Assembly: GCA_015680685.1 (NCBI GenBank)
Contig: MNCI01000449.1
Coordinates: 119,577-169,227, forward strand
Origin: Gnetum montanum
Taxonomy: Eukaryota > Plantae > Gnetophyta
Length of the DNA: 49,651 nt
Direction: 5' to 3'
A program made the position numbers and the translations under genes. Below, piece by piece: positions 4,788 through 44,600 of the stretch (position 1 is its first letter; the number at the start of each line of letters is the position of its first letter). The notes below the pieces were generated by a model, which was not told where the DNA came from, did no database searches, and worked only from the letters and a program-made list of their open reading frames with translations.

Positions 4788-5551
4788 ACTTTACTCAGAA
4801 TATATTTTGTTTCAATGCAATTTACTTTCCATGTACTTAGTTATATTTGCATTTTTATGCACATTAATCAATTGGTGGAATAAGCATGGCTAGTTTCAAG
4901 CATAAACACGTATTCATTGGGTAATCCTAATAACATTATTGCTTGTTTTACCTAGTAACATAATATTTGGTAATCCTAGTAATGGATACGTGAGTTCAAG
5001 ATGTGCATGGCAAGTTGGAAACTACTCTCATCACCCTTAGGATAGTTTAGGATGTATCTTCTTATTATTAATTAAATTAAGTAATTAATTTATATATTAT
5101 TATTTAATTTAGTTTAAAACCTCAATAACATCAATAATCATATGCTTCACTTTGGACTAAACCATATGCTTCACTTTACTCAGAATATATTTTGTTTCAA
5201 TGCAATTTACTTTCCATGTACTTAGTTATATTTGCATTTTTATGCACATTAATCAATTGGTGGAATAAGCATGGCTAGTTTCAAGCATAAACACGTATTC
5301 ATTGGGTAATCCTAATAACATTATTGCTTGTTTTACCTAGTAACATAATATTTGGTAATCCTAGTAATGGATACGTGAGTTCAAGATGTGCATGGCAAGT
5401 TGGAAACTACTCTCATCACCCTTAGGATAGTTTAGGATGTATCTTCTTATTATTAATTAAATTAAGTAATTAATTTATATATTATTATTTAATTTAGTTT
5501 AAAACCTCAATAACATCAATAATCATATGCTTCACTTTGGACTAAACCATA
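4788..5551. repeat. Near-perfect tandem duplication, period 385 bp
   Basis: 4788-5166 repeated at 5173-5551. Confidence 0.95.
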
Positions 5552-14299: not shown

Positions 14300-14689
14300 T
14301 TAGAAACGCTTGTACCTTCGTTTCTTCTGCTGCATTCTCCAACAACAAGCCACTACTCCAAACCCACAACTTGCAATTGCTATTGCAACTGCAGCACCAA
14401 TTGGTACTGTGACAGCACTAGTGGGAGAAAGATCTTCCGTTATACGTTGCTTTTGATCAGCATTTTGTTTAACTTGTATTGAATTCTTAAGGCTGGCTCC
14501 ATAGTAATTCATAAGGAACTGGTAAACTTCCGTCTTGTTCCAGAGGGTATCTAAGTTTGTTTCATCATGCTTCTTTCTTGAAGAGTCCCAGCAAGTTAGA
14601 CAAAGGTGTTTTGGTGGCCATATAACTTTTGGAAACTTCGGGTCACCTGTTTTTAATTTGGCCTCCTCGACCATTAATCGTTGATTGAC
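14300..14689 (-). CDS. QSOX: QSOX exon 12 (C-terminal CxxC and TM anchor)
   Basis: VNQRLMVEEAKLKTGDPKFPKVIWPPKHLCLTC...ACCWRMQQKKRRYKRF*; a possible alternative donor lies at 14315. Confidence 0.88.
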   Translation of the reverse strand, partial: VNQRLMVEEAKLKTGDPKFPKVIWPPKHLCLTCWDSSRKKHDETNLDTLWNKTEVYQFLMNYYGASLKNSIQVKQNADQKQRITEDLSPTSAVTVPIGAAVAIAIASCGFGVVACCWRMQQKKRRYKRF

Positions 14690-17600
14690 CTGTAAAAAGA
14701 CAGAATTCATGATCCTTAACAGGCTTTGCCAACTGATTTCATAATAAATCATATGAAATGAACTCACCTTATTATGAGCATTCCATAGCCAAAGAACTAA
14801 GTCACGCTGTGATTTTATAGGCTCCTGGACACTGATAACTGGTTACGCTTAGTTTTCACAACCAAGTTAAAATTAAAATATTGCCAGAAATTTACTATAA
14901 GATTTAATATATGCAAACCTGGAACACATATTTGAGAAATGCTGGCGACATTCTTCACAAACAAAAAACTTTCTCACAAAATCACAAATTGCCACAAATG
15001 TGTTCATGCTCTCACCATCTTCAACTCTCACGGACAATGAATGAAACAAAAGCCATAGGCCACAACTGCACCCAAGTATACTTATCAACATACAGAAAGA
15101 AACAAACATGCTGCTTATAATCCTATAATCAAGTTTGCACCTAAATATCATGCTTTATCTGATATCATGTTACAACCATCGCAATAATTATTTTTAAGCA
15201 AAAACTGTGACTACGACGTATGAACAATGTTGTTCCGCTAAACCAGCCCAAAACTAATTCTTAAATTTAAGATAGTGAAAAGCAAATTTCTAAATTAGAT
15301 AGCATTTTCAAGCATCTGGCTCCGCTTGGCCAGACAATAGGATCCAATTCTGGGAGTACTAATACAAAATTCTACAAAAGTTTGCAGAATTTGACAAAAT
15401 ACATAGCCAGTTCTTTGGCTAGGAAAACATCTACTACTTGGCTGTTTTTTTTCAAGCAATACTTTTTGGAAAATGAAGCAACTGATTTTTTTTTTTAAAG
15501 TCCAGCTTTCTTGCCCTGTCAAATAATAATTTGAAAAAGATTTTTTAAAAAAGAAGAATCCAAAATTCAAAAGAATCCAAAATTCAAAACTTCAAGAAAA
15601 CTAAAAAGTGGGAGCATCATGAGCGTTGGGCGAGTGGAGGACATTGGGAGCGTGGGGCATGTTGGAGGGGGTGTGGCGAGTGTTGGCAATGGCGGAGGGG
15701 TTCTTGCGGACGGCAGGTTGGGTCAGGTATCAAGGGGGAGAGCTCGGAGGGTTGGGGGTTGCTGAGGTGGCAGTGGAAGGTAGCACAGCTGGGAGTGCGA
15801 AGGGACCAGCCAGCAGGGCTATGGTGTCACCTAATGGGGAGGAAGGGACTGAAGCTTGCTCATGGGAGGGCAGCACATGAGACTGAAGATGAGGCATCCA
15901 CTTGTAGAGGGTTTGCATGCTTTGGAGCTTAGCCTGCTTGGCAAGTTTATTTCAGAGGGTGTGCAACCTAAGATGGACCTTATCCAACACTGGGCTTGCA
16001 TAGCCTAGGGATTGGCGAATGTGCAAGTCCGAAGCCTAGCGGATGACAGGCTTTTGTTTGTGTTCCAGTTGGAAGCAGACAGGGAATGAGTACTATTGGG
16101 GGGACCATGGTTTGACAGGGCCCATGGGTTGGCTCTTGCGAGGTGGAGGGTAGGGGTCCACCAAGATGCAAATCTCTTCAATCGGGCACCAATTTGGGTT
16201 TGGATCTTGGATCTGCCTCTGGAGTTTTGGACGTCGGTCTTTCTGAAATCACTAGTTGGATTGTTCAGGGAATTTATAAAGTTCAACACTTTCACTGCCT
16301 CGATGGACAGAATGGGCTATGCTCATTTCTGCATCTGGAGGTCATTGGGGTATGAGGATCGGGTCAGCAAAGTGGTTTTGGACCTAGCCCCGGGAGATGA
16401 AAAGATACAGGTCCAGTGTGAGAATCTACCGACCATTAAGCCAGTGCCAAGAGAGGCATTGTCTGCTAGGTGTGCGATGTATGGAAAGGGGCACTTGACA
16501 GCGGACTGTCAGATCTGACTGAAGGGTCAGCTGCACCAATCACAGGGTGGGTGGAACCTAGTTGGGAGGAAGGGTCAAGTGGTGAAGGCAGCAACTGAGG
16601 CACTGGCATGTCAAGTACATAAAGCTAGACCCCATGTGCCTACCATGGGGGCAACTGTTGGAGGAGAGGGGCAAGGACTTATTGAGAAGGTTGGGAAAAT
16701 GTCGATGGCCTTGGGTTATGATACAAGGGAGTCGAAGTTGTTGGAGGGTGAGAGGTTTAAGACTACAAAGGTGTGACAGGATGAGACGGTAGAGGATATT
16801 TCCACCACATAGTCACCTATACACCGAAGGTCAAGGCTGCAACTTTGACGGAATTGCAAGGTGGTGAGCTCCCTCCATTAGGGGAATGGATTACATTGGG
16901 TTGAGGCTCCTCCCATCCAAAGATGCAAGACATCATTGGGGCCCGACAAGCACTTGCTGAATCAGTGTTGGGGTGGCTATGGTTTCCCCGACAGGAAGTA
17001 AGGTTAGTCAGCCGGATGCACTGGCAGCGAGGAAGAAATTGACGCAATTTGATATTGATCTGGGAGTGCAAAAGGCCCTAAAAAAGATGTATCACAAGCG
17101 AGCATCTGTTTCTCCATGAAGATTCTTTCCTGGAACTACAAGGGGCAAGGTACCCCCTACAAACAAAATACCCTTAAAACAATTGTATGGAATGAGGGAT
17201 GTGACATGGTGTGTTTGCAAGAGACAAAGTTGCAAGCAGCTGAATCAAGATTGTTACAATGGGAGGGCTGGAATTTGTAGGTGGTCCCATGCAAGGACCG
17301 TGCATGGGGACTAGCCATTTTATCCCAGTTTCAGATTATGTCGATTGATGAATCCAAATGGAGTCAGACAATTCATGTGACTCATGAAAACATTTGGCTG
17401 ACAAATGTTTACAGGGCGCAGAATTGGGAGGTGCGGTTGCAAGAATTGAGGTGGGTGGCCCAAGTGGTCCCTGATAAAGAGTGGATCCTAATTGACGATT
17501 TTAACCAAAAATTGTACCCATGGGAGAAAATGGGAGAGGACAACATGAAATTGCCTAGAGGACCAGAACATGCTAAGTTTCTACAGGACCAAAATTTGGT

Positions 17601-20600
17601 GGATATGGATACTGAGGGCTACAAATTTACTTGGAGCAATAGGAGATGGGGGTAAGATCAGGTTCAATCTTGAATCGACCGAGTTTGGGTTAGTATGCGG
17701 TTGTTATTGGTATTCGATATTCAAGTCATGAGAAAGGAATGACATGCTTCGTATCACTGATCCATTCTTTGTCAACTTGGCAGTAGTCAGGGTCAAGCTC
17801 CCAGGTCCTTCCATTTCGAGCGCACATGGCTGGGTAAGCCATGGTTGAGGCCAATGGTTCAAGACATCTAGCAAGGCTAATTAGTGGATCAAGAACCAAG
17901 GGAATTCCTAAAAGAGGGACTAAAGCTATTAAAATAAAGACTAAGAGCTAGAGCTTCAGAGGAGTACGATTTCAAGGCTTATAGGGTGCGGTTGCAAAGT
18001 AGCCTTAGGGAGATACAAACACTGCAAGAAAATGGGGCTGATCTAGCCGATGAGGAGCATGAACTATTGGGAGAGCTGTAGGAGCTAGATCTGGAAGAGG
18101 AGGGCTACTAGCGACAATGGGCTCGTAGTACCTGGTTACACGAGGGAGATTGGAACACGTGCTTTTTCTTCGTTGCGGCCAAAGGATGGGGGGAAACGAA
18201 GAAAAAGCTACAATGGATGTTACATGGGGAGACGGGAGAAGGGGCCAAGTGGGCATCACAAGTAGTTAAGGCAGTGCAGGCTTATTGGGACAATATTTAG
18301 CAAGGTACAGAGATGGCACAGATTTCAACTCCTGTGCGGCAAGCTTTGAATGAGACCGAAAACCAGGCTTTGATGTGGCCTTTTTCTAGACTGGAGCTGG
18401 AAACTACTATGAGGTCATGCAAGCCAATAAGGTGCTAGGGCCGGATGGGTGGCCCATAGAATTTTTTCAGGAATTTGATGACATTTAGGGGGCGAACCTA
18501 TTAGATGAGTTCAACAGTATGTTGCAATGGCAACAGGTTCGCAGGGAGCTCAATTGCTCGCGAATTGTCCTTATTCTGAAGGTGCTGAATCCCACTTCGT
18601 CGGCCCATTTTAGGCCAATCAGGGTTTGTAATACTCTTCTAAGACTTTTCACCAAAATGATTGTTCACCAGTTATCACCATTAATGGAGAATCTGGTGGC
18701 AGAGAACCAGGAAGGGTTTGTCAAAGGCTGTTTCCTGCAGGATCAGGTCTTGCTACTTGAGGAAATTCTACACTTGCTGCAAAGGTCTAGATTTCCTGGG
18801 ATGTGTGTAAAGCTAGATATCACCAAGGCCTACGACACTATAAGCTAGGCGGCTTTGAAAGAGATAATGCTCCATAAAGGGTTCAAGCCCGAATTTGTTA
18901 ATCTCTGCATTTGGCTGCAAAGTTCTGGTCGATATTCTTTTAACATTGATCGGAGATTGTGGGCATTCAAGCCGCCAATAAGAGGCCCGCGGCAAGGAGA
19001 TCCATTGTCACCATTGCTATTTATTTTAGTAATGGACATGTTGCAAAACTATTGCATTGTCGAGGGAATGCAAGGGCTGAACATTGCTGGGGTCCACTAT
19101 CTCACTGCGCATTAGGTGGATGATACAATTCTTTTTTCTATGGCAACCGTTCCCCAACTTGAGGCACTTAAGAGAGCCCTAGAGCGAATGGAGTTGGAGC
19201 TAGGTCTCGAAATCAATAAAGGTAAGTCAACAATACATTTGATTAACACAATGGCACTGGTGGGTGGGAGGATAACGCAAGTGTTGGGAATCTTGCTAGG
19301 CCACATGCATGACTCCTATTTAGGGATGACAGTTTTCAATTAGCACCTTAAGAAAACGTGGATGGGACTAGTTCAAAGACTGTGCGAAGACAGATCATTG
19401 GACCAATGGGTTTCTAACTAGAAAAGGAAAGATGCTACTGGCTTTGACTATGTTGATGGCGATGGCAAGATTCATTGCTTCCAAGGGCAAGGGTGGGGAG
19501 AAACTCCACTTGGTGTGTTGGGAGACAACAGTGAGACCGAAAACAGCCGAGGGAATCAGGCTATTATCATTCCATGACGAGGTTAGGCTAGGCATGTAGT
19601 GCCTTGTGAACAAATTGATCGAACAGGAGGAAGGACAGGTGCCATGGGTGAGGCTGATGTGGTAGAAATATTGTAGGTGGGAAGTGGACACTGGGGGGGT
19701 CACAATTATGGCAAAATATCTACAAGCATGTTAGGGAGATGCAAGTGAAGGAGATGCTAAGTAAACATCCCAAAGAGTTGATCTAGGCAATCCATCCACC
19801 GATTGCTAGTTGGATTGATATTTGCTGATGGCAACTTCCCAAAAAGATTAAGGCCTTCGCGTGGTTAATCGCTCATAAGGCGTTGTCGGTGCGTGAACTT
19901 TTAAGAATGTGGGGGATAAATATTAATACAAATTGCCTGTTTTGTACAGCTAATACCAAAACACAAGATCATTTTTTGTATCACTATCAATTTATGCAAG
20001 ATGTCTAGTGAGCTACTAGGCTTTCGCACTACTAAGGCCGAGCAAAGACTCCAAAGAGCTGGCCATGTTGTGGGCAAAGTGGAAGTGTAGAGATAATTTG
20101 ATTCTTTGTGGGAAAAGGCTACTATCACCGAATTCCACTGCCAACATTGGGTTAAATTTGTGAGTTGAAGCGATGCATAGTATGGGGTAGGTGATGATAT
20201 ACAAGCTGGCAGTCACTGAGTTTAAAGGGAACGAAGAGCTTTAGGAGATGATCATAAGAGCTGGATGGGATGAAATGCTACAGCATATTGAGGGGGAGCT
20301 TGGCCTGCCGAATTAGTCTTTCTTTGATAATTGGGTAGGTGATGAAACTAAGTTTCGTAGAAGATGGATTTTGGTGACAAAAATGACCTTAGCAGAGGTA
20401 ATAGGAATGCCAACAAAGGGGGAAATCATTGCTCCGACACTCCACAATCAAACATATGCTAAAGAGTTTATCCAAGGTGGGTGTGGTTCCTCAAATTGCA
20501 AGTGGGCACATACAAAAGGCAGCGATGTCCTTGGTGTGGCAAAATGCAGCTATCTTGATTGACCGATTTTTCATTTAGCTAAGTTGCCCCCACAAGTTGT

Positions 20601-23600
20601 TGGGAGTCCATTTTGCATTTTTGCAATGACTAAACCATGGGATTAGGGTCAAACATGCCTTGCTTCTTTCTAGACTCTCTAAAACATAAGCGGCCAGGTT
20701 GGCATCCTGGGGTGATTATGGCCCTGTGGCAATCAAGGCTGATTGAAATTCCTGGGCAGCTGAGGTCATGGCTGGTTTATCAAAGGAGGCATGGGCAGGC
20801 TGTCCAGGGAACTCAAACGCTCACTAGCAAGGAACAAGGGGAGGATGGTGAGGTTTTGACAATTAGAGGTACTGGTTGGGAGGCAAGGTGGACCAGGAGG
20901 TAGGTGGAGATTCAATAGGAGGCGGATCTTCAAAGGGCAGTGGACCTACAACAAGTGGGGGATCTTCTTGAGATGCAAAGAGTGGTGTAGCCATGCCAGA
21001 AAAGGCCAGAGGGTGATGCAATGCTGTAGGAATGATGGGAACAGACACGAACTCAGCGTGCAAGTCAGGCCGCAGATGATTCATAGAGGCCTGCATCGGA
21101 GAGATCACGGTGAGGTTCAGGGTAGGGCTGTGGGGTGTTTGGTTTGGGCAACTTTTGGTTGTGCGGTTGGGGTTTTGGTCCTAGGGAAGGATTTGGGGTT
21201 GTGGTATGCTGTGTTTCAATACCTAGAATTTTGAGAGCTAATTGGGGGGTGATCATGCCTAGCTTCAGGCCAGGGTGGATGGCACAAGGGAGGGGAGGAG
21301 GGGGTGGGGGGGAGGAGGGGGCAGAAGAGGTGGGATTTTGTGTGGGGGCGGGCTGATTTTGGGGAGTGATATGTTGGAGGTTGGGAGGGTTCTTTTTAGG
21401 CTTCATGCCCTTGTATATATATATTTTTTAGTTAATATATCTCAACATGTTCTCAAAAAAAAAAAAAAAAAAAAGCTAGCAACCAAACTAATAATCTGAC
21501 ATATTATTGTTTTCTCATTATTCATATTGTTTGAGTATTCTTGAAATTCTCATGGAAGCCTTCCAATTTTGGACGGTGTAAAATTCATTTCAAACTATTG
21601 TTAAGGAACAATATTGAAAGTGATTGAACAGAAATGCAATGCATTGCTGAAATGTAAAAGTAGGGCATAATTAAAGGTTCTCACATTAGATTATGAGATT
21701 CCCAGTATTGATTGAAAATACAGAGATTATAATAAAACAAAATATAAAAATATTTGGCATTAGCAACATGTTAAGGAAGATATGAGAAAAGAAATAAAGT
21801 TCATACATGTCATGTAAAGCTTAAAATGGAATTGATCCACTTGTTCCAAAACAAAAATGCGAACAAAAAATGCAGTCAGAGTACAAGTAGGATATCAGTT
21901 ATATATTAAAAACAGTATGAGAGCCCACAGATTCAACTACAGCATGTACTACGTTCCTGAAGCATTTTAACTACTTGAGCTACAGAAATAGCTTTTTGAT
22001 CAATCACTACATATTTGGTCAACATCATATAAGATGAGTTGGCAGCAAACGTGTCCCAGGAATACTCCAACTAGATCAGTGGTCAAGGAAGTGGAGAAGT
22101 ATTGATAACAAACTCTACAAGTTTACTTTACAGAATGTTGGATTTGCATGACATGAATGTTGGAAGAGAAATTCCTAATTTGTAAGCATGATTTGTGTCA
22201 CTTCCTACGCATTATGATTCGAGATAATTAATTTCATCTTTAGAAGAAAGATTGGAACCCCGAAATATGCTATTATAGACTAAAATTATTTAACGTTAGA
22301 AAACAGGAAGTGGCTTGGTTTCTTTCTATATATGAATAAGACATTGTTCCCAAACAAACATGCATGAACATAAAGACAAACAATTACTAAACAGAAGATG
22401 AAGAAGGATACCTAAATCCCCGAGTTGTATTTCTGCTGCCACGACAAAATACCTGTTACACCACAAGGTTAAAAAAACGGGAAAAAACAATAAACCAAAA
22501 AACAAAACAAAACATTTTCAATGTTACAGTCTATAACTAATTACTTTAGATGAGATGGATTATATTAAAATAAATGCGCTGTCCAAAAAGAAAAACATAA
22601 AAGGCTAGTATGGGTCCAACCTTAGGAATCGATTAGTACATTAAAGGAGGTTATTTTATATTCTGTATTTGTTACTATAATTTTTGATAGCTTCTGCAAT
22701 ACAACTTTGATGCTAGGTCACTTGGATGATTACTACAATCTCAAAACAATTTTGGTTGTATTCCAAATATTATATCACTAATAAAATATTTGTCTCACCT
22801 GTTCATAACAAAGACTAGCATTGCAGAGAGAGATTTCAGCATCTAAATTACTAGTAAGGCAGTTTGCCTCCTGACCAGTCAGTTGTCAATTTAAATACAA
22901 CTCGTACAACGTGAGGGTACAAAAAAATGACATCTTCATATTCACCCCATTTGCTGAAGTAGGAAACTAACTATAGAATACAGTCAATGCCGACAAGAAG
23001 CTACACATGATGATAGTGGAATGAATTCAACAAAAATGATTGCTAGATTCTCGATAAATTTTCCAAGGAATGTATCACCATAGAAAGCACTGGAAGATAC
23101 ACGAGTTTTTTGGCTGACACAATTATTTAACAAAATTTTAAGGAATGGAAAAATGCCCAACAATTGGAGAAAAAAATTTGTTGTTCCCATCTACAAAAAT
23201 AAAGGAGACGTACATAATTGTGCAAACTACAAAGAGATCAAGCTAATGAGCCATACTATGAAGCTTTGGGAGAGAGTTAAAGAGCAGTGTCTCAAACTTG
23301 AATCAACAATATCAGAAAATCAATTTGGATTTTTGCCAAGGAGACTACTATAGAGGCTATTTTTTTGATACGATAATTGATGGAGAAATTTAAAAAACAT
23401 AGAAAAAATATATATGTGATCTTCATTGACTTGGAAAAAGCATATGATGAGTTTTTAGAGATATTATTTGGTTGGTGGGCCTTACAAAGAAAAAACATCC
23501 CTGATAAATATATTAATGTGATTCAAGACATATATGAAGGGGCTACCACTAAAATTAGAATACCTTGTGGAACAACATTTGATTTTCCAATCTACATCAA

Positions 23601-26600
23601 GGGTTTGCACTTAGCCCGTACTTATTTGTCATTATTATAGATGAATTAGCAAAGCAACTACAAGGTGAAATATCTTGGTATATGCTATTTTCAGATGATA
23701 TTGTGTTGGTGGATATAACTCAATAAAATATTGCTTCTAAAATGGAGAGGTGGAGACATGCTCTAGAATCAAAAGGCTTAAAAATTAGCAAAAATAAGAC
23801 AGAATATATGGAATGCAATTTTAATAACAGTATAAATAGTGGTGAAATAGAAGTGACAATTCAAGGCCAAAAAGTCCTTCACTGCAAACAGTTCCACTAC
23901 ATCGGATCAATCATCCAATCATATGGTGAAATTGATAAAGATATAACAAATAGAATTGAGGTAAGATGGTCAAAATGGAGATAGGCTAATGGTGTTTTAT
24001 GTAATAAAAGAATATCAATAAAACTAAAGGGAAAATTTTACAGAACAGCAATTAGGCTTACAATCTTATATGGTGTTGAATGTTGGGCAATACAAAAGAG
24101 GCATGAACAACAAATCAGTGTGACAGAAATGGGAATGCTTCAATAGATATTGAATGTTACCAGAAGAGATAAACTACATAATACAAACATTAGAGAATGA
24201 CTTGGAGAGGCTTCTATTTCAAATAAGCTACAGAAATGGTGGCTTAGATGGTTTAGACATGTGCAAAAAAGATCAGAAAGTGAGCCTATAAACAAAGGTC
24301 GCTAAATCACTGTTACAAGAAAGCCACCAAAAGGAAAACCAAAGAAAACATGGGAAAAACAATCAAAGATGATTTGAAGAAACTGCAAATAAATAGAGAT
24401 CTAGATCTTCATAGAGGTAAATGGTCAAAAAAAAAAAAAAACTCATGCAACCAACCACATTTTATTGGGACAAGGCCAAGATGATGATGATGATGTATCA
24501 CCATAGAAATGAATGCTACTAACTTGTATGCACCCAATCAACGATTTACATTTTCTACAAGAAATATTGCATATTGTTGAATCCTTGCATTATAGTAGTT
24601 GCAAAGTAGAATTTCAATTCGTCCAAAAAGCATAATGATGTTTTCGTTGCTTGCTTTAAATTTACAAATCTATATTACAAGATGGTTTTGAAATTCCTCA
24701 AGAAATATTGCATTTTGTTGAATCCTTGTATGACACTAGTTGTAAAGTGGAATTTCGGCCTGCCCAAAAAATTTAATAACATTTTCATAGATTGCTTTAC
24801 ATTTACAAATCACTTTCACAGGATGGCTTTAGGATGGGAGGAGAAGTATGCACATAATGAAAAGAATGTTCTGCCAATATCATCATCATTCTTGCATTGC
24901 CCTAACTACATAGGGTCAGCTACGTGAATCCTTTTCTAGAATTCACTTCTATTAAGAGCCAAATTAGCATCAATACTCAAATCTTAGAGATCTTCCTTTA
25001 TTCCTACAAACCAAGTATTCTTTTGGTCTACCTCTTTGTTGTATCATCCATAGCTTACATTTTTTTCTTTTTTTGGTACAAGACATTTTGAATCATACTA
25101 GATTCATTTTTAGTTGCAATTGATTTCTCAAGGGTTGGAGAGAGAATAAATAACATTACAGTTAATGGCCAATTGAGGTGTAGCAAAGGCTAGTTTTTAA
25201 AGATACAACTAGTTGTAGTAAAAAGAAGAAAAAAAAGAAAAAAATGTAAAGATATAATGACTACAATAAAAACAACTGATTGTAGAAAAAAGGAAAAAGT
25301 TAAGAACGAACGAAGGGCAAAAAATAAAATTTAAGAGATATAACAGCTAAAATAAAAATGGCTACCTCTTTGTTGTTTCCCAACTTTAATAAAGTGTCCT
25401 CTAACATGTGCACTCTCCAGTTTTCTCAGCACATGACCAAACCATTTGAAATTACTATCCTTAATATTCTCATCTATGGGTGCTACCCCAAACTTTCCCT
25501 AATAAGAGAATTAATTTGATCTTTCCTAGTTGCATCCAACATCCACCTTAGCATACACATCTCTACCACAAGCACACATTGAGCTTGATAAACATCCACT
25601 TTAGCACATGCATCTCTACCACATGCACACATTGAGACTAATGCTTTTGATAAGCCAAGAATCCACACCATGAAAAATCATAGTTCTAGTAGCAATTTCG
25701 TAGAACTTCTCCTTAAGCATAGTAGGGATTCTTCTATCACAAACTACATTAGTAACTTCTTGCCATTTCATCTATCCTACTTCAATTTTGTTTAGCATAT
25801 GCATCTCTACCACATGCACACATAAAACCTAATGCTTTTTGATAAGCCAAAAATCCACACCATGAAAGATCACGAGTCTAGTAGTAATTTTGTATACCTT
25901 CTCCTTCAACATAGCAAGAATTCTTCTATCACAAAACACATTACTAAGTTCTTGTAATTTCATCTATCATGCTTCAATTCTGTTTATCACATGATTGTTA
26001 ATATCACTATCCATTTGAACAAGTTATCCCAAGTATCAAAATTGCTTGCTTTGTATAACATTTTGGTGTTGAATTCTAATTTTTATATCTTCATTACTCA
26101 CTTTTAAACTAGAAATGCACTTCTTGCATTCTGTTTTACTTCTGCTAATCCTCAACCCCTTTAATTCTAGAGTAATTCTCCAAGTTTACACTTTTTTAGT
26201 CAAGGCTTCCTTCAATTTATCCACCAATACAATATCATATCATCTACAAAGAGACTACACCACAGGATATGATATTGTAGTTTGTTAGTTAGTTTATACA
26301 TGCTAATGACAAACAAATAAGGGCTTAGAACATATCCTTGATATATCCCTACCTTCACAAGAAAGTCCATAGTCTCTCCACATTTGGTGTTACCTCAAGT
26401 TGCGGCTCCATCAAACATATCTTCAATAGCTTTTATGTACCAAATAAGAATATCCTTGCTCATGCCCACCAAATAATCTCTTAGAAAATCTATTATAACC
26501 TCTCTGAAAATTAATGAAAATCATATGCACAGTCTACTTTTTAAACCTGAATTTCTCCACCAGTTGCATGAACATGAAATAGCTTCCATAGTTAAGAGTT

Positions 26601-29600
26601 GATCTTCCAAGCATAAAACCAAAATAATTATAAGAAACTATTTATTCTTGCCTACCCTTTTTTAACTTCATCGTTTGACTCATAAGCTTGATTCCTCTAT
26701 AGTTTTCACAGTTTTGAATATCTTCCTTCTTGTGGATGTATACTATAATGCTCCTCATCCAATCATCTAACATTTTCCCCTCATCTCAGATTTTGTTGAA
26801 TAGATTTGTTAACTAAGTGATCCCTATATCTCCTGTAGACTTCCATTCCTCTATAGGAGTACCATCCAACCCTATGGCATTACCATTCATCTTTCTTTAC
26901 TTCAAAGGCTAATATATAGATGGCCATTCCTACACTTGATTCAGTGTAATCACCTTCATCTCTAGAAAATTCTTTATTAAGTAGCCATTGAAAATAGATC
27001 CTCGATCTGTCCAAAATTTCCTTGTTTATAAATAAAATCCTGTCATTGTCCGACTTGATGCATTTAATAAGGTTAACCTCTTTACACCTCTTGTTTTGAG
27101 TCTTGGCTAACTTGTAAATCAATTTCAACACCCTCTTTAGCTCCTAACGTCTTGTAAAAAGGTATCAAAAGAGCTAAGTTCAACCTTGCTCGCTGTCTTC
27201 TTTGGCACATTCTTTGCAATCTTGTATCCTTCAAAGACATCCATCTCCTCCTTTGTTACCACTACTTGAAACACTTCATTTCTTTTTATCTTGAACTTTC
27301 TATTGCACTTCTTCACTCCCATCACTATGTTTCCTTTTGAATGTGCTTATTCCCTTTAGATACATCAAAGATTTCCTCCCCCATTCTCTCCATCCAGCTT
27401 TTCATCTGATTGTCACATTGTAGTTCAAATTCCAAGGTCCTTCAACAAGCAATCTATCCTTAAATCTTCTGCCAGTGTAAAGCAAGCAAAGGAATAACCA
27501 TATCTAGGAATTGCATAATATGGTTGCTGGATCTCTGAAAGTTCTTCAAAATTTTGGGACAGGCTCATAGTTTCACATTCTTTGATGCATCAATGTGAAA
27601 ATAAAACATGAAATAAATGTACTTAACAGCGTATCTGTCAAAGACTCAACAAATACATTAACATTTTAACCATCCAGAAATTGCCTCACACTCTAATATA
27701 TTGATCATTTTCATCTCTATATGTCATATTATGTTTGAGTTGATAGATAAACATACTGTTTTTATTGATACTGAAGATTTTACAGCAAATACATTTTATT
27801 TGATGTTATAATTATTTTTTTAAAAATTATAACCTGGACCTGCTGCCCCTATTGGTGGGAGACCTTGACCTCGCAGATGCCAAATTTTACAAACATTGGA
27901 GGGGTGACTCCACCACGTTCTGTGGGGTTCACATTAACCTCACGAAGTCTGCCATCGTTGGGTATATGGGGCTACATGCAGCTGGGGAGGTTGCGTTGCT
28001 GACTAGGTGGGGGCTACAAGATGCCAATGGGTTCTTTTAGGAGCCAATGCCAAAGATTGGCAACGAGCAGGTGCCAAAATCAACCTTGCTGCGGCTTTGG
28101 CAGGAGGTGACTAACCTCATGCAAAAGTATTTCGTATAGTCTGGTAATGCCTGGAAGCTGTAGGAAGCACACTTCACCTTTCTACAACGCACACGGCTGG
28201 AGCACCAAGTAAATCTTCCAAAATTTTTCTTAGCTTCCCTCAGGCAGGAATGATGGAGGAGACACTCTAGCCTCATCTTGGCCCTTTGGAAGGCTGCACA
28301 ACTATTAATGCCGCCTCCAATGAGGCCCTCCCCTTTTATAACTATGTATGCATGGTGGCAGCCCACCCTTGAGGAGCTTCCTCCTCCTCTATGCCAACAA
28401 TGCAAGAGGTTGCGATGAGGGTGGGGGATGGATCTAAATGGCAAGAGTCTATAACCGACCAGCCACCGAGTTTTCAGGAACAACTTCTACAGGCTCAAGA
28501 AATTATCCATAGGGAGTTGTAAGTGAAGTAAGAGGAGGATCTCTCTAGGGCAACCATTGAGGTGGAGTCCATAGTGTGTGGTGAGGAGCACACCAAGTGG
28601 CAGCCACCGAGTTTTCAGGAACAACTTCTACAGGCTCAAGAAATTATCCATAGGGAGTTGTAAGTGAAGTAAGAGGAGGATCTCTCTAGGGCAACCATTG
28701 AGGTGGAGTCCATAGTGTGTGGTGAGGAGCACACCAAGTGGCAAGCAAAGCTACTCAAGCAGGAGTAGGAAGACTAGGCCAGGGCCACATAGGACAAACA
28801 ACACCAGAAAGAAGCGGTGAAAGAGGAAAGGCGCCAAAGAGATCTAAGAGAGGCAACTTTTATGAACAACTTGGAAGAACAACCACATGCTCAAATCAAG
28901 GAAAACCTACTTAGGGAGGAGTAGAAACGCAAACCACATGAAGAAAATACGCAAGAGCAACAAATCCATGGTCCGCTTCAGAAGCAGCAAATGCAAAGTA
29001 GCCAAGATGTTACACATGGGTCCAACGTGTGTCGTTGGCTCAAAATGGAAAGATGCCCATAAATTATTGTGTATCAACCGAAATGCTACCTAAACAACCT
29101 TAAGAAAATTCATTCACATTACTACTAGCAGGCTTCATCCTATTAGGGCTAAAACCCTAGTGCCTAAGGAGCGATAACGAAGAGAAGACCAGTACAAAGA
29201 ATTTCAGGAGGTTGTGGCTTTCATGACCTTTGAGCACCACAAGGCCATTCTTGACACCATCCATGCTCAGGAAAGGGCTTGTTGCCCATGTACTAGGCTA
29301 CCACCGCCTATTTGATGGTCCTAATGTTTGTTTAGTTCCATGTTGGGGGCATGGAGCGGGTTTTGCATCCAAGGCTGGTGGTTTTGGGGGCATGGTGCCT
29401 TGATGTTTTAAAGTTGATTGGTGTTTGCAGGGAGCTATTTTCCTTCACTCCTTTCCTTTTTCCTTTTTTGCTTTCTTTGCCCATCGGTCAATTACAAAGC
29501 ATACCGATATGCTACCAAACAAATTTTTATAATGGTGACAAGGTATGCTTCTTCGTGCTTATGTTTAGAAGATCAACAAAAGTTGAATAAAAATATTTTG

Positions 29601-35600: not shown

Positions 35601-38600
35601 ATCTATATGTCGACAAGGCCAATCTCCAAATTCAATGATAAATAATGCTAAAGGATTGTGTTCATCAAGAACCCAGTTTACCAAATCCAATTGTGTTGCC
35701 AAAATTGTTGATGATGGAATAACTTCTTTCTTTGGAGAGCCTTGGATTATATGGGGCGGGGGGCGCAAGGGATGTGGTTGTTGCCGCAGGAAGCAACACC
35801 CGCGGTCTGAAACAACACCCCCCCTAGGGGTTCGTCAACAGCCAATGGCAGGCGCAGTGTGGGCACTCCATCTCATGAGGGAGGTCCAACGTGTTTCGGT
35901 GGTCCTCTGTGTCCACAAAATTGGCGGCCTGCTGGATACCTTGCATGGCCGACTCCTGCCTATTCTGATCAAACGGTGAAGTTCCCCCATCAGGATGGAA
36001 ACGTGCCAAGGTCCGGCGGATGTGGCACCTGAGCTCACCCTAGGAGCTATCACAACTGATGCCTAGGATGAGGTATGGGCACCGCCCCCCTCTAAGTCAT
36101 TGCTGAGCACTGTGCTCGTGTGCCCGATCAAGCTGTCGCTATTGTTGCTCCTCTTCCTCCTGCATGCGTTCCTGTTCCGCCTGCCCCGCCTCTTCATGTT
36201 CCCTTTGGGCAGCTTCCTCCTGTAGCAGTTCTTCTAGCACTTGGGCCCGGATTTCATCCACTAACCAGGCCCGGGCAGCGTTGGCCATGAGGTCTTGCTG
36301 CCTCACCCTCTCTTGCTCCCATTCGTAAAACTGGGCCTCCAAGTTGGCCCGGGCCTGTGCAAGGGCTTCGTGTTATTTGGCCTCCCATTCTTGTCGTTCA
36401 GCCTCACACACTTCGATTGCGTCCCTTTGTGTGGCCTGCCACAGTTCCTCGTTCCAATTTATGCTATGTCCGGAGGTTTCCGGCAGGGGTATTCCGGTGT
36501 GGCGAGGCTGGAAGGGGGGCACCGGTCCCACTAGGTCCACCACTTCCACGTGAAGGTTGTTGCCAGTAGGGTCCAACAGTTGCCCTGGCTAGTCGAAGTC
36601 ATAGAGCCAGGGGGCCAGCAAGAGGGGCCCCCCGCTGGGGGGCACCGTGGGACGACAACAGGTTTTGCCTCCCTTCTGCCCCCGCCACAAGGCTAAGATT
36701 AACCCCGAATGGGGGCCACATCATTTAAGTTGAAGGGCCGCCAGGAAAAAACGGGGAAGGTTAACCTGGTAGCCAAATTTCAGGCAACACAGAAATGCAA
36801 AGTGTATGCCCTGGAGTTTGGAGCCGTTGCCAGATTGGACAAAAAGTCTGTCCACCAAATCTACCGCATAGGCCCAGAGACGGGGTAGAGAGGATCTGGG
36901 CACTTGTCAGCTTTGTGTACGTGGCACGGGCCCTTCAAAAAATAATTTCGTGTCTTGCAAACTGCATGTGGAAGGTAGGATGACCTCTTCGACGACCTAG
37001 GCCCCAAGACAACTGGCAATTGAGGATTCCGTGAAGGTAACCTCGCACCCTCAGAAATAGGTTCGGCCATTGCACCCGTTAGCGAAGAACGCGTCGTTAG
37101 CCATATCTGGGTCCCTAACCAGCCGCTATAGGGGGTCACACCAGCCACACTGCGTCACCATCTGCCAAAGCTCCTCGTCCTCATGACCCCCATCGCCGCC
37201 TCGATTTCTTTCCACGTGCAGAGAGCTTGGAAAACTAGCAGCAAGGGGGCAACCTGTCCTGGTGAAAAATAGTGTGGTTTCTTGCTTTCCATGCTACCCA
37301 TAAAAGTAGCGTGGCCCAAGAATCGCCGATGAGGCACATCGGGGGGGTCACCCCCNNNNNNNNNNNNNNNNNNNNNNNNNNNNNNNNNNNNNNNNNNNNN
37401 NNNNNNNNNNNNNNNNNNNNNNNNNNNNNNNNNNNNNNNNNNNNNNNNNNNNNNNNNNNNNNNNNNNNNNNNNNNNNNNNNNNNNNNNNNNNNNNNNNNN
37501 NNNNNNNNNNNNNNNNNNNNNNNNNNNNNNNNNNNNNNNNNNNNNNNNNNNNNNNNNNNNNNNNNNNNNNNNNNNNNNNNNNNNNNNNNNNNNNNNNNNN
37601 NNNNNNNNNNNNNNNNNNNNNNNNNNNNNNNNNNNNNNNNNNNNNNNNNNNNNNNNNNNNNNNNNNNNNNNNNNNNNNNNNNNNNNNNNNNNNNNNNNNN
37701 NNNNNNNNNNNNNNNNNNNNNNNNNNNNNNNNNNNNNNNNNGCATGTTGATCCGGTTAATGATGGCATTTGGGGGGGTGGCTACGGCCGCCACGAACCGG
37801 GTAACCACCTTGAGGATCCCCGTTGCCACAAGCAATCGCCTTTTTCGAGTCAAGAAAAGATTTGCCTAGTGGCCCATCTTTCTTTCAACTTTCTCCATCA
37901 GCAGCCCCCACGACATGCTCCACCCCCATTGGTAGAGTGGGATGCCCAGGTATGTGTCTTTGCCCATTCCGGACAGGATATTCAGGACTTGCACCACCCG
38001 ATTTTTAACTTGTTCATCCACATTAACAAAATGAGCTGAAGACTTAGCTCTATTAATCTCCAGCCCCAACTCAACTGCCAGTCGGGATAGAGCGATGTTG
38101 ATGCATCGTGCTTGTGGGACCCCCGCCCGATTGAACAGCATTGTGTCATCCGCATAGTGTTCAGCCCAACATGCCACCCCTGCAATGTCCAAGCCGTCTA
38201 CCCCTGATGTGCTACAATAGTTTTGCATTAGATCCATAGTGATGATGAAAAGCAGGGGCGAAAGTGGGTCCCCCTGTCGTAGCCCCCTCCTTGGTGAGGA
38301 GAGACCCCACAACCGCCCCCCCACGTCAAAAGAGAAACTGGCAGATGACTGCATGTGAGTGCAAAGCTGGATGAACCATTGGTCAAAGCCTTTCTGTTGC
38401 ATAATGGACGTCAGGGCTTCCTAGCTGAGCATGTCGTATGCCTTGGTAATATCGAGTTTGAGACAAAGCCCAGGGAAACCCGTAGTTCGAAGTGAGTGGA
38501 GCACCTCCTACATGAAGAGAACCTGATCCTGGAGGGTTCGGCCCTGCACGAAGCCTGCTTGGTTAATTCCCACAAGTTTGGGCATAAGTGGCACAAGCCT

Positions 38601-41600
38601 ATGCACAATCAATTTGGAGAAGATCCGAATAAGCATGATGTAGACTTCGATAGGGCAGAAGTGTTCTGGGCGGTGTGCATCCGATTGTTTTGAGATGCAC
38701 ACAATTCAGGAGCAATTGAGCTCCCTTCGGACCTGCCTCTTGGCCAGCATAAGATTGAACACATCCATGATATTGGGTCCCACAATATCCATGAATGTAT
38801 TAAAGAACTCAAGGCTCCAGCCGTCAAGACCAGGTGCCTTCCCTCCCGGCATGCTATTGATGGTGGCGGTGAGTTCCTGCCACGAAAAGGGGGCCAGCAA
38901 CCACATGTTGTCCTCCTCGTTCAGACATTTATGCCAATAATTTAGTGGTCATGGCAACATGGAGTTGTGCAGCCAATAATGGCAAGTGCCAGGTAACCAA
39001 ATCAATTGGGACAAGAAGAGATTTGGCCACCCCTTCCAGCCAAAGATTTGACCTAACCATGATAGTAATGCTGGACTTTCTCTAAAAGCTAGATGCCAAA
39101 ACAAGATAATCCTCTGAACCCTATATATTTTCTCTTAATTCCATCACTAATAAGGTTCATTTACTCTAATGAAATACATTTTATGTTTGCCAAGACATCC
39201 AGAAACAGGGAATCACAGTTCCAAACAGGCCCCACTGCTGATTGGGTTATACTATGTTTCCTTTTTGCTTTGCTTTATTATTAATTATGTGTGATAACCA
39301 TTTTATCAAGCCTAGCCTGCTTTTTGAGTGATTCCCATTTTGTCTTGAAAGAACATTCAGACGTTTTGTACAGTTTCAATTTGAAGTATTGCAACACCTA
39401 TCTCTTCAAAAAATAATGTAATATTGTGTCACAATATTTGGTAATATTTAGAATAAATTTCAATTTCCTATTCAGAGTTAAATACAAACATATTCACAAT
39501 GCTAACTTTTCTAAGATAGATTACCTCAACTGGATTGGAGTTAGAAACTAAATCAGGAATTTCAAACTTCTCATCATCAATACTATACGACCTGTTAAAA
39601 CAAAAAGTGTCATTACTAAAGTAAATTCTTTTTTTAACATTTTAAACTACAAGATACATTTTAATTTTCTTTCAGAACACTAACAATAAACCAGAATACC
39701 CAGAGGCTGTTCAAAATGAAACTTAAGAATATGTAAAACTTGAAACCCATTACAAAATATAAGTGTATCTATTTAGAAGCATAAATCATAAGAAACCTTA
39801 TACAAATAATGAAAAGAACAAAGTAACGAAATTAACTACAAATTCATACATCTGTAAAGTGTATAACCAAAACAGGAATAGTACCAACATCATGCTAACA
39901 AATATGGTCATATATGATATATCAACTAGCAAGAAGCTCAACCAACCAATACCATAACATCCATTAGAACACAGGTTTGAAAAATCGTAAAAGCTAAAAC
40001 ATGTTAACATTGTAATGAACTTATTTGCTTACTGAAACCAATTTAATATTTATAATGGAGCAAACCTCCAATTTATATTGGTGTGAACACTGGTGTTTAT
40101 ATCAAAGGCAGCCTAAGAAAACTACTATTTATATCAACAACAAACTTTACTGGGAAAAAGTTAAAAGAAGTACAACATGAGAATAAAGCTGAACAACTAT
40201 GATTTCAAATGAGGCAGGAGTCATGAGTTATAACAAGAGCGTTGTTTAAAAATATAAAAGAATAAAAAGAGAAAAGAGATTTTTGAGGGGAAAACCATAA
40301 AACAATGAAATTTCAATTTGCAGAGGCACATTTCATTAACCTGTCCAAAGCATTGAACTGTTTTGTATTCTCTTTCACACATTAACTTTTGGAGAAGGAA
40401 TTGAATTTTGCCATAGGTCTTTCAAAGGTTATCAAGTTTCTTGAGTTAATCATAACAAAGCCCTTGTCATCTTTTTACCATGAATTTGCTTAAACTTAAC
40501 TGTAGTCTAAATTGATTGAGTACAGCTCATAGTATCAATAGTTGTTTTACCTTTAACTTCACTCCTTAAAAAATGGGACTATAATTATTGGTTATGCGAG
40601 GTGCTGAGGATGTATCAATGTCAAAACCTTGAAAGGCAGTAGATTCTTCTTGCTTTTGATTAGCTTCTACAGCTAATTTGCAATATTGCAGAGTTGGGTA
40701 TTGAGTAAATAGGTAGACTTCATGGTAGTGATAAGTGGCTTAAGTGGTTAGTTCATTGACTGGTTAGGCAAGAGGTTTCCAGTTCAAGTCACACTTAAGG
40801 CATTATTATATTACTTTATAGTTCTTCTAAAGCATCATGTTAGTTAGATGTCTTAAGGTGTACTTATAGTTCTTCTAAAGCAGTACTTTACAACATCAAC
40901 TGTTCCAAATGTAAAACTGAAGTACAATAACCTCAATTGATATGCATCAAAAGTTCATGTTGCTTTCTCTACCTAAACTATTGCCTTAGGTAACAGTATC
41001 TATAATCATTTTTCAAAGAAACTGCATTAGAAAGGGAACAAAACATACTTTCCAATCTTTGCATTGATCCAGCTTAGCAAACTCTCAGCAGTGCGTGCAC
41101 CATCAATTCGTTCAATCCCATTTTGAACTTTTAGATCCCAACTACCAAAGGCAAACTGTGACGGTTTGCCCCACAAAAGCATGGGATAATGGGAAACTGA
41201 AAATCTATCACACAGCCTTGTGTTTACCTGTGCTGTCATAGAATGCCAAGGCATCAAACTTTTTGTATCCCGATTGCTATAAGGAAGCTCATCAAAAAAG
41301 CATAGAAAAGACCGTCAAAATATATCTAAAGAGTCATATTAAGAGAGCACGCTGATTCTAGAAACATAGTTACAATATGTAACAGATCCAATATTTCAAA
41401 GGAAAAATATCAAGGTGTGAGGTATCATAAATCACCAAATTGTATGTAGATTAAAATTCAGTTCAGCTCAAGAAAAAAAGGTACACATAAAATACATTTT
41501 TATAGGTGATTTGTAGACACATATAATCCTATTATGCTTCTTAAATACATTTTCCTGTACTGTCAATACAACATATATAAATTTGGGTAACCTATTAGAA

Positions 41601-44600
41601 TAGCCAGTTGATTTAACAATGGTTTTAACAAGAAGCTGTCAAGCTCAACACATATTTTTACCATGCCACACCATACAGAAGTGGACTTGAGCCTTAAACA
41701 TCGTATCAGGCTAAGCACATGAAACGTTGATAAAGAGAAAAATGAAAATCATATAATTCTAACTAGGGATCCAATATCATTCAGATAAAAAATATTGTAA
41801 AATCACAGACGAATATATAACACAAAGCAATGCTTGCTTTTATACCATGATTTCTGTTTTGGTTTTGCTTTCTTGTCTATTTCATGGTGCAGAATTCACC
41901 TCAACATATTTTATTGTGCTGTGTATGTGGTCATAAATTGTTAGATCCTTGGCCTTTTGACCTTTTAGTTATCTGTCCGTACTTGTTATCATTTTTTGGA
42001 AAAATAAAAATAAGATTTTACCAATACTTTCTTTACTTATTTATAGATCGTTAAAAGTTATCTAAATATTTGCCTTAGTTGTAAAGAGAACAGACCTTTT
42101 CAGCACAGTCCACCTTGACCATCAAAACAATGTCAGGATGCACAGCTTCACGACCATTGAAAAGCCTAGCAACTTTCTCGTAATGAGGCTGCCATATAAA
42201 TTTTCCAGTCAAACACAAATATGATCCATGGCATTATGAAACTGCCAGCCAAAAAAGCACCATCTGCATAGTTACCTTGTAATTTTGACAGGCAGGACAC
42301 CTGCAATAACATAAACCAGAACGTCCAAGAAAACTCAAAGACATGAAATTTTGGCACATCAAAATTTATATATTTTTCTTACATCAACCTATCAAGCTCT
42401 TACTAATTTTATTATTTAAAAAACATATAAACTGTAAACAAAACAAGTGCATTTAACAATCAGCATTTACATCTTAACAGTTTTTTCACACAGCTAATCA
42501 ACAGAAAACTATTATCAAACACTTGCATTTGTACAAAAAGCTTGAAATTTTCTAAAGAGCTAATGAACTAAAAAAGGAGGGAAGGAAAAACATACATAGT
42601 AATAAGAACGTTAAAAAGAAAAAAAAAAACATTATGCCCTCCATCACCATTGATTGCCAGGAGAATTTATCAAAGTTATCAAATTATCTAGTTCATGAAA
42701 TTTTTCATTCTGCATCAAAACAAAACAAAAGTTTACTTGGGTTTATAAACTTGACTTAAGGAAATGAAGATTGATGAGAGTTAACAGATGTTGCTGTAAA
42801 AATGCTTGTGAGAATGCAACCCATATCTTTATGCATTTCTCTGCAATAGCTCATAGTTGGAACAAAGTTACACTACCAAAAATATGCATTCTATAGTACC
42901 AAAATCCTTATACGGTTTTATTACATTCCAAATATGGAATCGTGGGTCATGGTATACGAATAAAATTTAGAGTGTTTTTCTAGCAGATGTGATTTCAACT
43001 TTGGAAAGAAAGAAATCTCTAAAATTTTGGAAAGATAAAAGCAACCTATAAAGAGTATAGTGGTTAGCAGTATAAAGTTGGAGGATTCATGAAAATGGCA
43101 CTTTAATGGTCATGTTGGATCTATGAAAATAGGATATAACAGGATTCATGAAAAACATGGATTTGGAGAGCACAACAATATGAGAGATTCACTATTGCAA
43201 TTTGCAAGTGCCTCTAACCTTGCAATTGCAACTACCGATTTCCAGAAAAGGACAAAACATTTAATTACATATAAGAGTGATATGGATAAAATACAAATTG
43301 ATTATTTCTTGATACACAAAAGAGACTACGCCATGTGTAAAGACTGCAAGGCTATACCTTGCAACTCAGCATTGATTAATGGTCATGGACTTAGCTATAC
43401 AGAGTTTCAAAGGTAGTATGAGAAAAGAAACTAAACGCATAAAATGGTAGAATTTGAAGAAAGACAGCATTACCTTATTCAGAGAATAATTACATCAAGA
43501 AGGCACCTGGAATTGCGATTGCTCTACAAATTTAATATCAAGCCAAATGGAAAGACTATTTTGGGTGAAATAAAAGGCAAAAAATACATCCCAAAGGAGA
43601 CATGGTGGTGGAGTGATGGACTGCAACATGCTATCCAAAACAAAACCCAAAAAAAAAATGCTTTAAGAAATGGCAACAAAGTAGAAACCAAGAAAATAGG
43701 TTGTTATACAAAATGGCAAAAAAGGAGGCAACAATAGTAGTAGCCAAAGCCAAACATAAGGCCTTGGACAGCTTTTATGAGAAATTAGGAACAAATGAAG
43801 GAGAAAAATCTACTTATAAATTGGCAAAAATCAGAAATAAGAAATGTATGGACATTGATCATGTCCAATGCATCAAGGAGGCAGATGAAAGAATTTTGGT
43901 AAAAGAAAATGAAATTTTTGATAGGTTGAAAAGTTGTTTTCAAAAATTATTAAATAAAAAATTTCCAAGAGAAAACATCCAAGAAGAAAAACTAGATTTT
44001 GGTTTGGTTAATGAGTTTTCCTTCTTTGAGGTGAAGAAAACTTTATCAAAGATGAAAAATGAAACAGTATTGGACCAAATAATGGAAGCTTGGAAAGCAC
44101 TAGGAGATCCAGGAGTTTCTTGGCTGACACAATTATTTCCCAGAACTTTGAAGGATGGAGACATACAAAACAATTAAAGAAAAAACATAGTTGTTCCCAT
44201 CTACAAAAATAAAGGAGATGTGCAAAATTGTGCAAACTAAAGAGGGATCAAGCTAATGATCCATATTATGAAGCTCTAGGAGAAAGTCATAGAGCAACAT
44301 CTCAGACTTGCACCAACAATATCAGAAAATCAATTTGGATTTATGCCAGTGAGATCTACTATAGAGGCTATTTTCTTAATATGACAACTAATGGAGAAAT
44401 TCAGAAAACAGAGAGAAAATCTACATATGATCTTCATTGACTTGGAAATAAATATATTAAAGTGATTCAAGACATATATGAAGAAGCTACCACTAAAATT
44501 AGAACAGCTTGTGCAACAACATCTGATTTTCCAGTCACAGTAGGTCTACATCAAGGGTATACACTTAATGAGTACTTATTTGCCATTATTATGGATGAAT

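Follow-up and report, generated by a model that had tools for sequence, protein, structure and literature searches.

A conserved coding module between ORF2 and the poly(A) tail of a dead L1-type LINE in Gnetum montanum, probably a C-terminal extension of ORF2

Introduction

The stretch of Gnetum montanum DNA analysed here, 49,651 nucleotides of contig MNCI01000449.1 (positions 119,577 to 169,227 of the forward strand; hereafter the window, with positions counted from its first letter), contains a long interspersed nuclear element (LINE), copy A (15605-21474, plus strand), in which a conserved domain of about 180 codons (20230-20765, plus strand) stands directly after the zf-RVT and C-terminal region of open reading frame 2 (ORF2), inside the retrotransposed unit. 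In two sister copies of the same window, copies B and C, a coiled coil and a weakly J-domain-like end follow this domain. Copy A represents an L1-type LINE of plants that is nearly complete in length, dead and full of stops. In the active ancestor of the family the domain was probably translated, as we infer from the three decayed copies, as a C-terminal extension of the ORF2 protein (ORF2p), within one long ORF2 and not from the separate ORF3 that an initial annotation of the window had proposed. LINE ORF2 proteins are usually described as a combination of endonuclease (EN) and reverse transcriptase (RT), sometimes with RNase H.

Conservation of the tail domain in three LINE copies

The domain was recognized by translation of copy A in three frames, with X at stops, and comparison of these translations with the rest of the window by tblastn. 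In copy A it is composed of the frame segments 20230-20478, 20480-20650 and 20640-20765, and these segments, the third one up to position 20738, are colinear with positions 37179-36676 of copy C at a linked E of ~2e-17. Equally, the domain of copy A matches copy B at 27837-28325 on the plus strand with E-values of 1e-5 to 3e-4, and the homologous part of copy B as a whole extends over 27837-28358. The protein matches among the copies A, B and C are colinear and equally spaced, and the identity between copies B and C amounts to 39% over 177 amino acids in the domain (E 9e-32), 31% over 132 amino acids in the coiled coil and 29% over 76 amino acids in the J-like end. At the DNA level, blastn among the window copies detected no similarity in the tail. 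Resolved by codon position, identity is highest at position 2 (0.61-0.70) and lowest at position 3 (0.30-0.34), a measure that leans on the protein-guided alignment.

It is highly improbable that the similarity of the three copies arose by chance or from composition and that the stretch is a long non-coding 3' untranslated region (UTR). Such an origin would agree with the lack of a Pfam, PDB or database relative for any piece, but it would have to account for the linked E-values of the A-C and B-C comparisons in colinear and equally spaced segments, for one frame that is kept in copy C over about 490 codons without a frameshift, for a codon-position pattern as found in coding sequence and for the restoration of a frameshift at 20474-20478 in relatives.

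The tail match of copy A is broken by two frameshifts, at about 20478 and about 20640, and by six in-frame stops. Related contigs lack 1 nt, or 2 + 2 nt, at 20474-20478, by which the first frameshift of copy A is exactly restored. Past 20480, copies B and C are matched in the frame of the segment 20480-20650, and the frame followed in the initial annotation was incorrect. A stop column common to copies A, B and C was not found in the three-way alignment, and the two stop columns common to two copies have CGG or CAG in the third copy. At one of these columns of the domain, TGA is present in copies B (28251-28253) and C (36721-36723) with CGG in copy A (20691-20693); at the other one, copies A and B have stops and copy C has CAG. 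Most simply, the stops shared by two copies would be the outcome of parallel C>T decay at CpG/CHG sites. The stops and frameshifts of copy A would equally represent decay after insertion, with many of the stops readable as TGG>TGA/TAG, CAG>TAG and CGA>TGA changes, the types that G>A and C>T transitions would produce.

Copy B (27837-29475, plus strand, with an approximate 3' end) comprises the tail only, namely the domain, the coiled coil and a decayed J-like end. It starts within about 10 codons of the domain start and has an AT-rich flank upstream, as is typical of a LINE insertion truncated at its 5' end. Within its coiled-coil part, an exact tandem duplication of 141 nt is located at 28460-28741. 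Copy C (35827-38906, minus strand) consists of an RT (38906-37866), an assembly gap, the tail and a weak J-domain end; the extra coding stretch after ORF2 that had been reported for this copy is thus present, on the minus strand. The tail of copy C extends from 37293 to 35827 in a single frame, which spans about 490 codons, is free of frameshifts and contains 10 stops. The assembly gap, a run of N at 37356-37741, interrupts ORF2 of copy C just upstream of the tail.

The module as an integral part of the mobile unit

To the three copies of the window can be added the contigs of three DNA runs, one of a further sample of the organism itself and two of related organisms, which were placed on 15550-21540 at a likeness of at least 80%. 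Related, more diverged contigs join 19811-20003 to 20150-20578 or 20150-20613, another related contig covers 20200-20883 and resumes at 21358, and about 11 contigs cover position 21398, within the ~100 nt that adjoin the poly(A) tail on its upstream side, a sharing that is as expected for the 3' end of a family. The summed depth in the X5 data does not fall at the boundary of ORF2 and domain, with values of 103, 218, 188 and 187 in the bins across it; it falls only after ~20750, to 58, 38, 68 and 47, with a single copy corresponding to about 8-10. A contig from the other sample of the same organism covers the same locus from 20437 to 21160 with 8 differences, and the junction at about 20765 is therefore not an assembly artefact.

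The order of the elements in copy A is ORF2, domain and an uninterrupted A20 (21455-21474, plus strand), the latter exactly as initially described. The module belongs to the mobile unit of the LINE because it is carried by three diverged copies, including the 5'-truncated copy B, because contigs bridge it to ORF2 and because the 3' end is shared. A repeat pair that flanks the 3' segment, as would be expected at the boundaries of an independent nested element, was looked for, as had been suggested, and none was found. Of the earlier view of ORF3 as an integral gene inside the retrotransposed unit, the coding module as an integral 3' part is consequently retained, with A, B and C carrying it and contigs bridging to it from ORF2, and the discrete ORF3 starting at 20173 is abandoned.

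It is improbable that the segment after ORF2 is foreign to the LINE, whether by nested insertion, by 3' transduction or, for 20860-21406, as a fragment of a proline-rich gene on the minus strand. For 20230-20765 a foreign origin is excluded by the homology to two LINE tails and by the contigs that bridge to ORF2. The adjacent region 20766-21454 has no match in copies B or C, translation of its minus strand gives proline-rich protein in open stretches of 113 and 81 codons, and the depth drops 3-4 fold after ~20750, all of which would suit a foreign segment. On the other hand, the region is not bounded by repeats, position 20883 is linked to 21358 within one related contig, the final ~100 nt ahead of the poly(A) tail are common to about 11 contigs and the G+C content reaches background exactly at 21475. 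The minus-strand proline-rich reading frames were rejected as candidates, as their lengths are within those of dinucleotide shuffles (P 0.14) and no Pfam family is matched.

The G-rich 3' region of copy A

The last ~690 nt before A20 (20766-21454, plus strand) contain 260 G versus 94 C with GGAGGGGA-type repeats and represent either a lineage-specific C-terminal part followed by the 3' UTR or UTR as a whole. The G-rich UTR placed before A20 in the initial annotation is hence correct with respect to its composition, and the UTR proper is either the entire region or the part that follows a lineage-specific C-terminal end. The longest open stretch in the region has 124 codons (P 0.045 versus shuffles). 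DNA and protein alignments of the region with the coiled-coil, J and 3' regions of copies B and C were no better than those of shuffles, and searches of Pfam and PDB with it gave no match. A few related contigs cover 20766-21454, several of which omit 21217-21356 or have other sequence in its place. A canonical G-quadruplex (G4) motif (21288-21312) precedes the poly(A) tail by about 145 nt. The 49.6-kb window has only one other canonical G4 motif, at 18226-18253, and both are located on the sense strand of copy A.

Extension of ORF2 or separate ORF3

The junction between ORF2 and the tail is the place at which an ORF3 with its own start had been proposed. The ATG at 20173-20175 is present, but reading from 20173 gives ATG CAT AGT ATG GGG TAG, so that the proposed ORF3 start (20173-20190, plus strand) consists of the ATG and four codons in the same frame as ORF2 and is closed by the TAG at 20188-20190. 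Neither does ORF2 end 5 nt before this ATG, as the nearest in-frame stop, the TGA at 20161-20163 (plus strand) taken as the ORF2 stop, sits 9 nt upstream in the same frame, three codons apart. In relatives the codon is TGG (Trp): at position 20163, A>G accounts for 124.2 of 134.2 (X5), 130 of 138 (X6) and 255.2 of 255.2 (X7) of the summed contig depth, and RNA reads show G in 11 of 11 cases. The TGA at 20161, the one junction stop compared in relatives, is therefore private to copy A. A three-ORF LINE would be recognized by conservation both of the ORF2 stop and of an ORF3 start after it, a combination that was not found. With a private stop that is TGG in the family, an ATG soon followed by a stop and a module in the frame of ORF2, the termination-reinitiation or subgenomic RNA that had been deduced from the tight spacing is not supported.

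The segments 20020-20160 and 20230-20478 of copy A are in one frame. The TAG at 20242 of copy A faces TGG in copy C, the TAG at 20314 faces Asp in copy C and Ala in copy B, and the homology between copies A and C continues through every stop of the junction. Upstream, the tail frame of copy C remains open as far as 37293 and overlaps the end of ORF2, which is in another frame; the overlap aligns to ORF2-frame sequence of copy A ('SFPSSLHVE' versus 'SPNST..L*VE'), and the shift between the ORF2 and tail frames of copy C is at or near a run of C5. As separate features of copy A, two directly repeated stretches of 16 nt, identical at 15 positions, lie 148 nt apart at the junction (20182-20197 and 20330-20345), and the part of the sequence that holds them is about 12 codons longer than in copy C.

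An extension of ORF2 is favoured because of the shared frame in copy A, the TGG at 20161 and the lack of a stop common to all three copies, and equally because relatives restore the first frameshift and the tail frame of copy C is open upstream. Several observations weigh against it. Copies A, B and C are all dead and the continuity of ORF2 into the tail is inferred and not seen, a common frame in copy A would arise by coincidence in one of three cases and copy C needs one frameshift for continuity. Furthermore, a Met conserved in copies A (20248) and C, a few codons past the TAG 20242 of copy A, is a candidate ORF3 start, and the flanks of copy A have no significant target site duplication, with the best candidate pair equalled in 21 of 300 shuffles.

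A true three-ORF LINE, with an ORF3 that starts at this conserved Met (ATG 20248 in copy A) and not at 20173 and that is translated by reinitiation or from an RNA of its own, is accordingly an arrangement to be considered, which appears unlikely. The Met stands in the same alignment column in copies A and C, the TAG 20242 of copy A is two codons before it, and the ORF2 frame of copy C ends at the TAG 37235-37237, about 70 nt upstream of the Met, with the tail in another frame. The domain begins about 75 codons past zf-RVT, and roughly at this distance after zf-RVT the ORF2s of plant L1 elements without RNase H come to their end. However, copy C has TGG opposite the TAG 20242, its tail frame continues without a stop over about 40 codons ahead of the Met and aligns there to ORF2-frame sequence of copy A, the tail of copy A is in the ORF2 frame and the stop at 20161 reads TGG in relatives. 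If the domain was indeed translated as an extension of ORF2, it would, speculatively, give the ORF2 protein an extra binding or oligomerisation surface and, where the J-domain is real, Hsp70 might be recruited to the LINE ribonucleoprotein particle.

The J-domain-like end and searches for relatives

The J-domain of copy C is weak, with a match to positions 18-63 of the DnaJ profile (PF00226) at an E of 0.091 and 13.3 bits versus a cut-off of 27.8 bits; the HPD tripeptide is found within 'RFHPDGG', and a PDB sequence search with the copy C J-domain gave no match. In agreement with the initial annotation, no DnaJ match (PF00226, E up to 10) was detected on any piece of copy A, and the alignment of its three frames with the J regions of copies C and B was not significant (P 0.05-0.8). 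The lack of a detectable J-domain in copy A may reflect a J-less sub-lineage, an internal loss or decay.

Database relatives of the domain were sought on several levels. Word-indexed protein searches with the pieces 36724-36906 of copy C and 20317-20559 and 20634-20900 of copy A yielded no candidates. A phmmer search with 36864-37154 of copy C versus 1.8 billion representatives gave three matches, multi-stretch alignments to internally repetitive proteins, which were judged spurious; this query was outside the coding frame of the tail, and therefore only the word-indexed searches bear on the absence of the domain from databases. Pfam searches with 28 tail pieces identified no family except for the weak DnaJ match in copy C, the PDB sequence search with tail pieces gave nothing useful and Rfam gave nothing in the window. 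The ESM Atlas, based on a protein language model, provided sub-threshold leads only, among them one weak Transposase_32 hit at rank 27 with a score of 0.81. Pieces of copies A, B or C had no match to Transposase_32 (PF20167) or the plant mobile domain at E up to 1-10, a comparison of low sensitivity because all pieces are short fragments. In the full-text literature, no LINE with a J-domain/DnaJ or with this tail was found, and nothing relevant on ORF3 in plant LINEs.

Landmarks and genomic neighbourhood of copy A

The assignment of copy A to the L1-type plant LINEs is based on an RT followed by zf-RVT and on an ORF1 with DUF4283, in the Pfam order ORF1, EN, RT and zf-RVT with A20 at the 3' end. 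Its 5' end (15605) is approximate and was set at a jump in G+C content; within the AT-rich, plant-like DNA of the window, G+C and GC skew rise across 16-22 kb on the plus strand, and the G+C content is back to background just after the poly(A) tail. All landmarks are on the plus strand. The ORF1 remnant (16096-16518) contains DUF4283 (PF14111, E 4.2e-11) and subsequently a CCHC-like motif identified by eye only, which bears out the DUF4283-like domain and CCHC-type knuckle of the earlier description. The ORF2 remnants (17281-20160) include an Exo_endo_phos_2 endonuclease (17281-17655), a decayed piece with an E of 0.0014 and 18.9 bits versus a cut-off of 27.4 bits, the RT (18519-19115) with an RVT_1 match at 18519-18848 (E 1.3e-11), zf-RVT (19829-20005, E 1.3e-11) and the C-terminal 'WAKWKCRDN' stretch (20020-20160), which aligns to 37324-37250 of copy C. 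From the EN-RT-zf-RVT order of the initial annotation, RT and zf-RVT are thus firmly recovered, and the EN match is below the Pfam cut-off.

Oligo-dT RNA-seq reads, mostly less than 90% alike, are found at low depth on both strands of the LINE (15550-21540), and by their divergence they indicate that diverged family members are transcribed. Near-identical orthologous contigs are present in two other organisms, and the insertion of copy A therefore predates their split.

In the neighbourhood, an exon of the Erv1/Alr family is located at 14873-15151 on the minus strand (Pfam E 3e-9), and neighbouring minus-strand ORFs at 14300-14767 and 41027-41257 read like a QSOX-type sulfhydryl oxidase gene; should they all belong to a single gene, its introns would be very long and would house all three LINE copies. 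On the plus strand, an unrelated second pair of LINE-like repeats occupies 23083-24493 and 44093-45451 with 83-91% identity and an RVT_1 match at 44462-44824, both members of which end in GATGATGATGATGA without an extra tail. An exact repeat of 300 nt occurs at 4788-5087 and 5173-5472, and a further assembly gap, a run of N, at 42-136.

Implications and comparison with known systems

The outcome of this analysis is in the first place corrective: the element includes the module as an integral part, a three-ORF organisation with reinitiation is not supported and a J-minus variant is not established. A long conserved C-terminal module of ORF2 in diverged plant L1 lineages would add a new accessory function to non-LTR (long terminal repeat) retrotransposons, and the J-domain of the sister copies, if real, suggests that a LINE recruits host chaperones. 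Tentatively, and with some doubt, a plant L1 clade might be envisaged that possesses an ancient ORF2p domain of ~180 residues essentially absent from databases, with ends that vary by sub-lineage, a coiled coil with an Hsp70-recruiting J-domain in copies B and C and a G-rich-encoded end in copy A, as a modular chaperone-recruiting tail.

Accessory coding modules at the 3' side of plant retroelements are known as additional ORFs (aORFs) of LTR retrotransposons, and Athila elements have 3' aORFs with partial similarity to Transposase_32 (PF20167) (PMC11728184). Copy A resembles these elements in the 3' position of its module but is a non-LTR element in which the module is probably fused to ORF2, and a kinship to PF20167 is only a candidate lead. 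The 3' UTR of mammalian L1 elements reportedly contains a G-rich, G-quadruplex-forming tract, to which the G-rich tract of copy A with a canonical G4 motif near the poly(A) tail can be likened, with sequence and host being unrelated and the G4 of copy A predicted from its motif.

LINEs are known to acquire domains at the C-terminus of ORF2, and the module in copy A differs from the known ones. In insect R1 LINEs, a tobamovirus-like superfamily 1 (SF1) helicase domain is present at the C-terminus of ORF2 (PMC4686597). As in copy A, the extra domain follows a complete set of ORF2 domains, and helicase-less elements occur in the same clade, but LINE clade, host and domain are different. The extreme C-terminus of ORF2 tolerates inserted domains (PMC4686597) and, as recounted in the same source, plant L1 LINEs have added an archaeal-type RNase H at this position (Smyshlyaev et al., 2013, via PMC4686597). 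These elements and copy A have in common the plant L1 type and an added module beyond the RT and zinc-binding region, which makes up the extreme C-terminus of ORF2 in the former and probably did so in the ancestor of copy A. Unlike theirs, the module of copy A is not an RNase H and has no Pfam match, and in the sister copies a coiled coil and a J-like end follow it.

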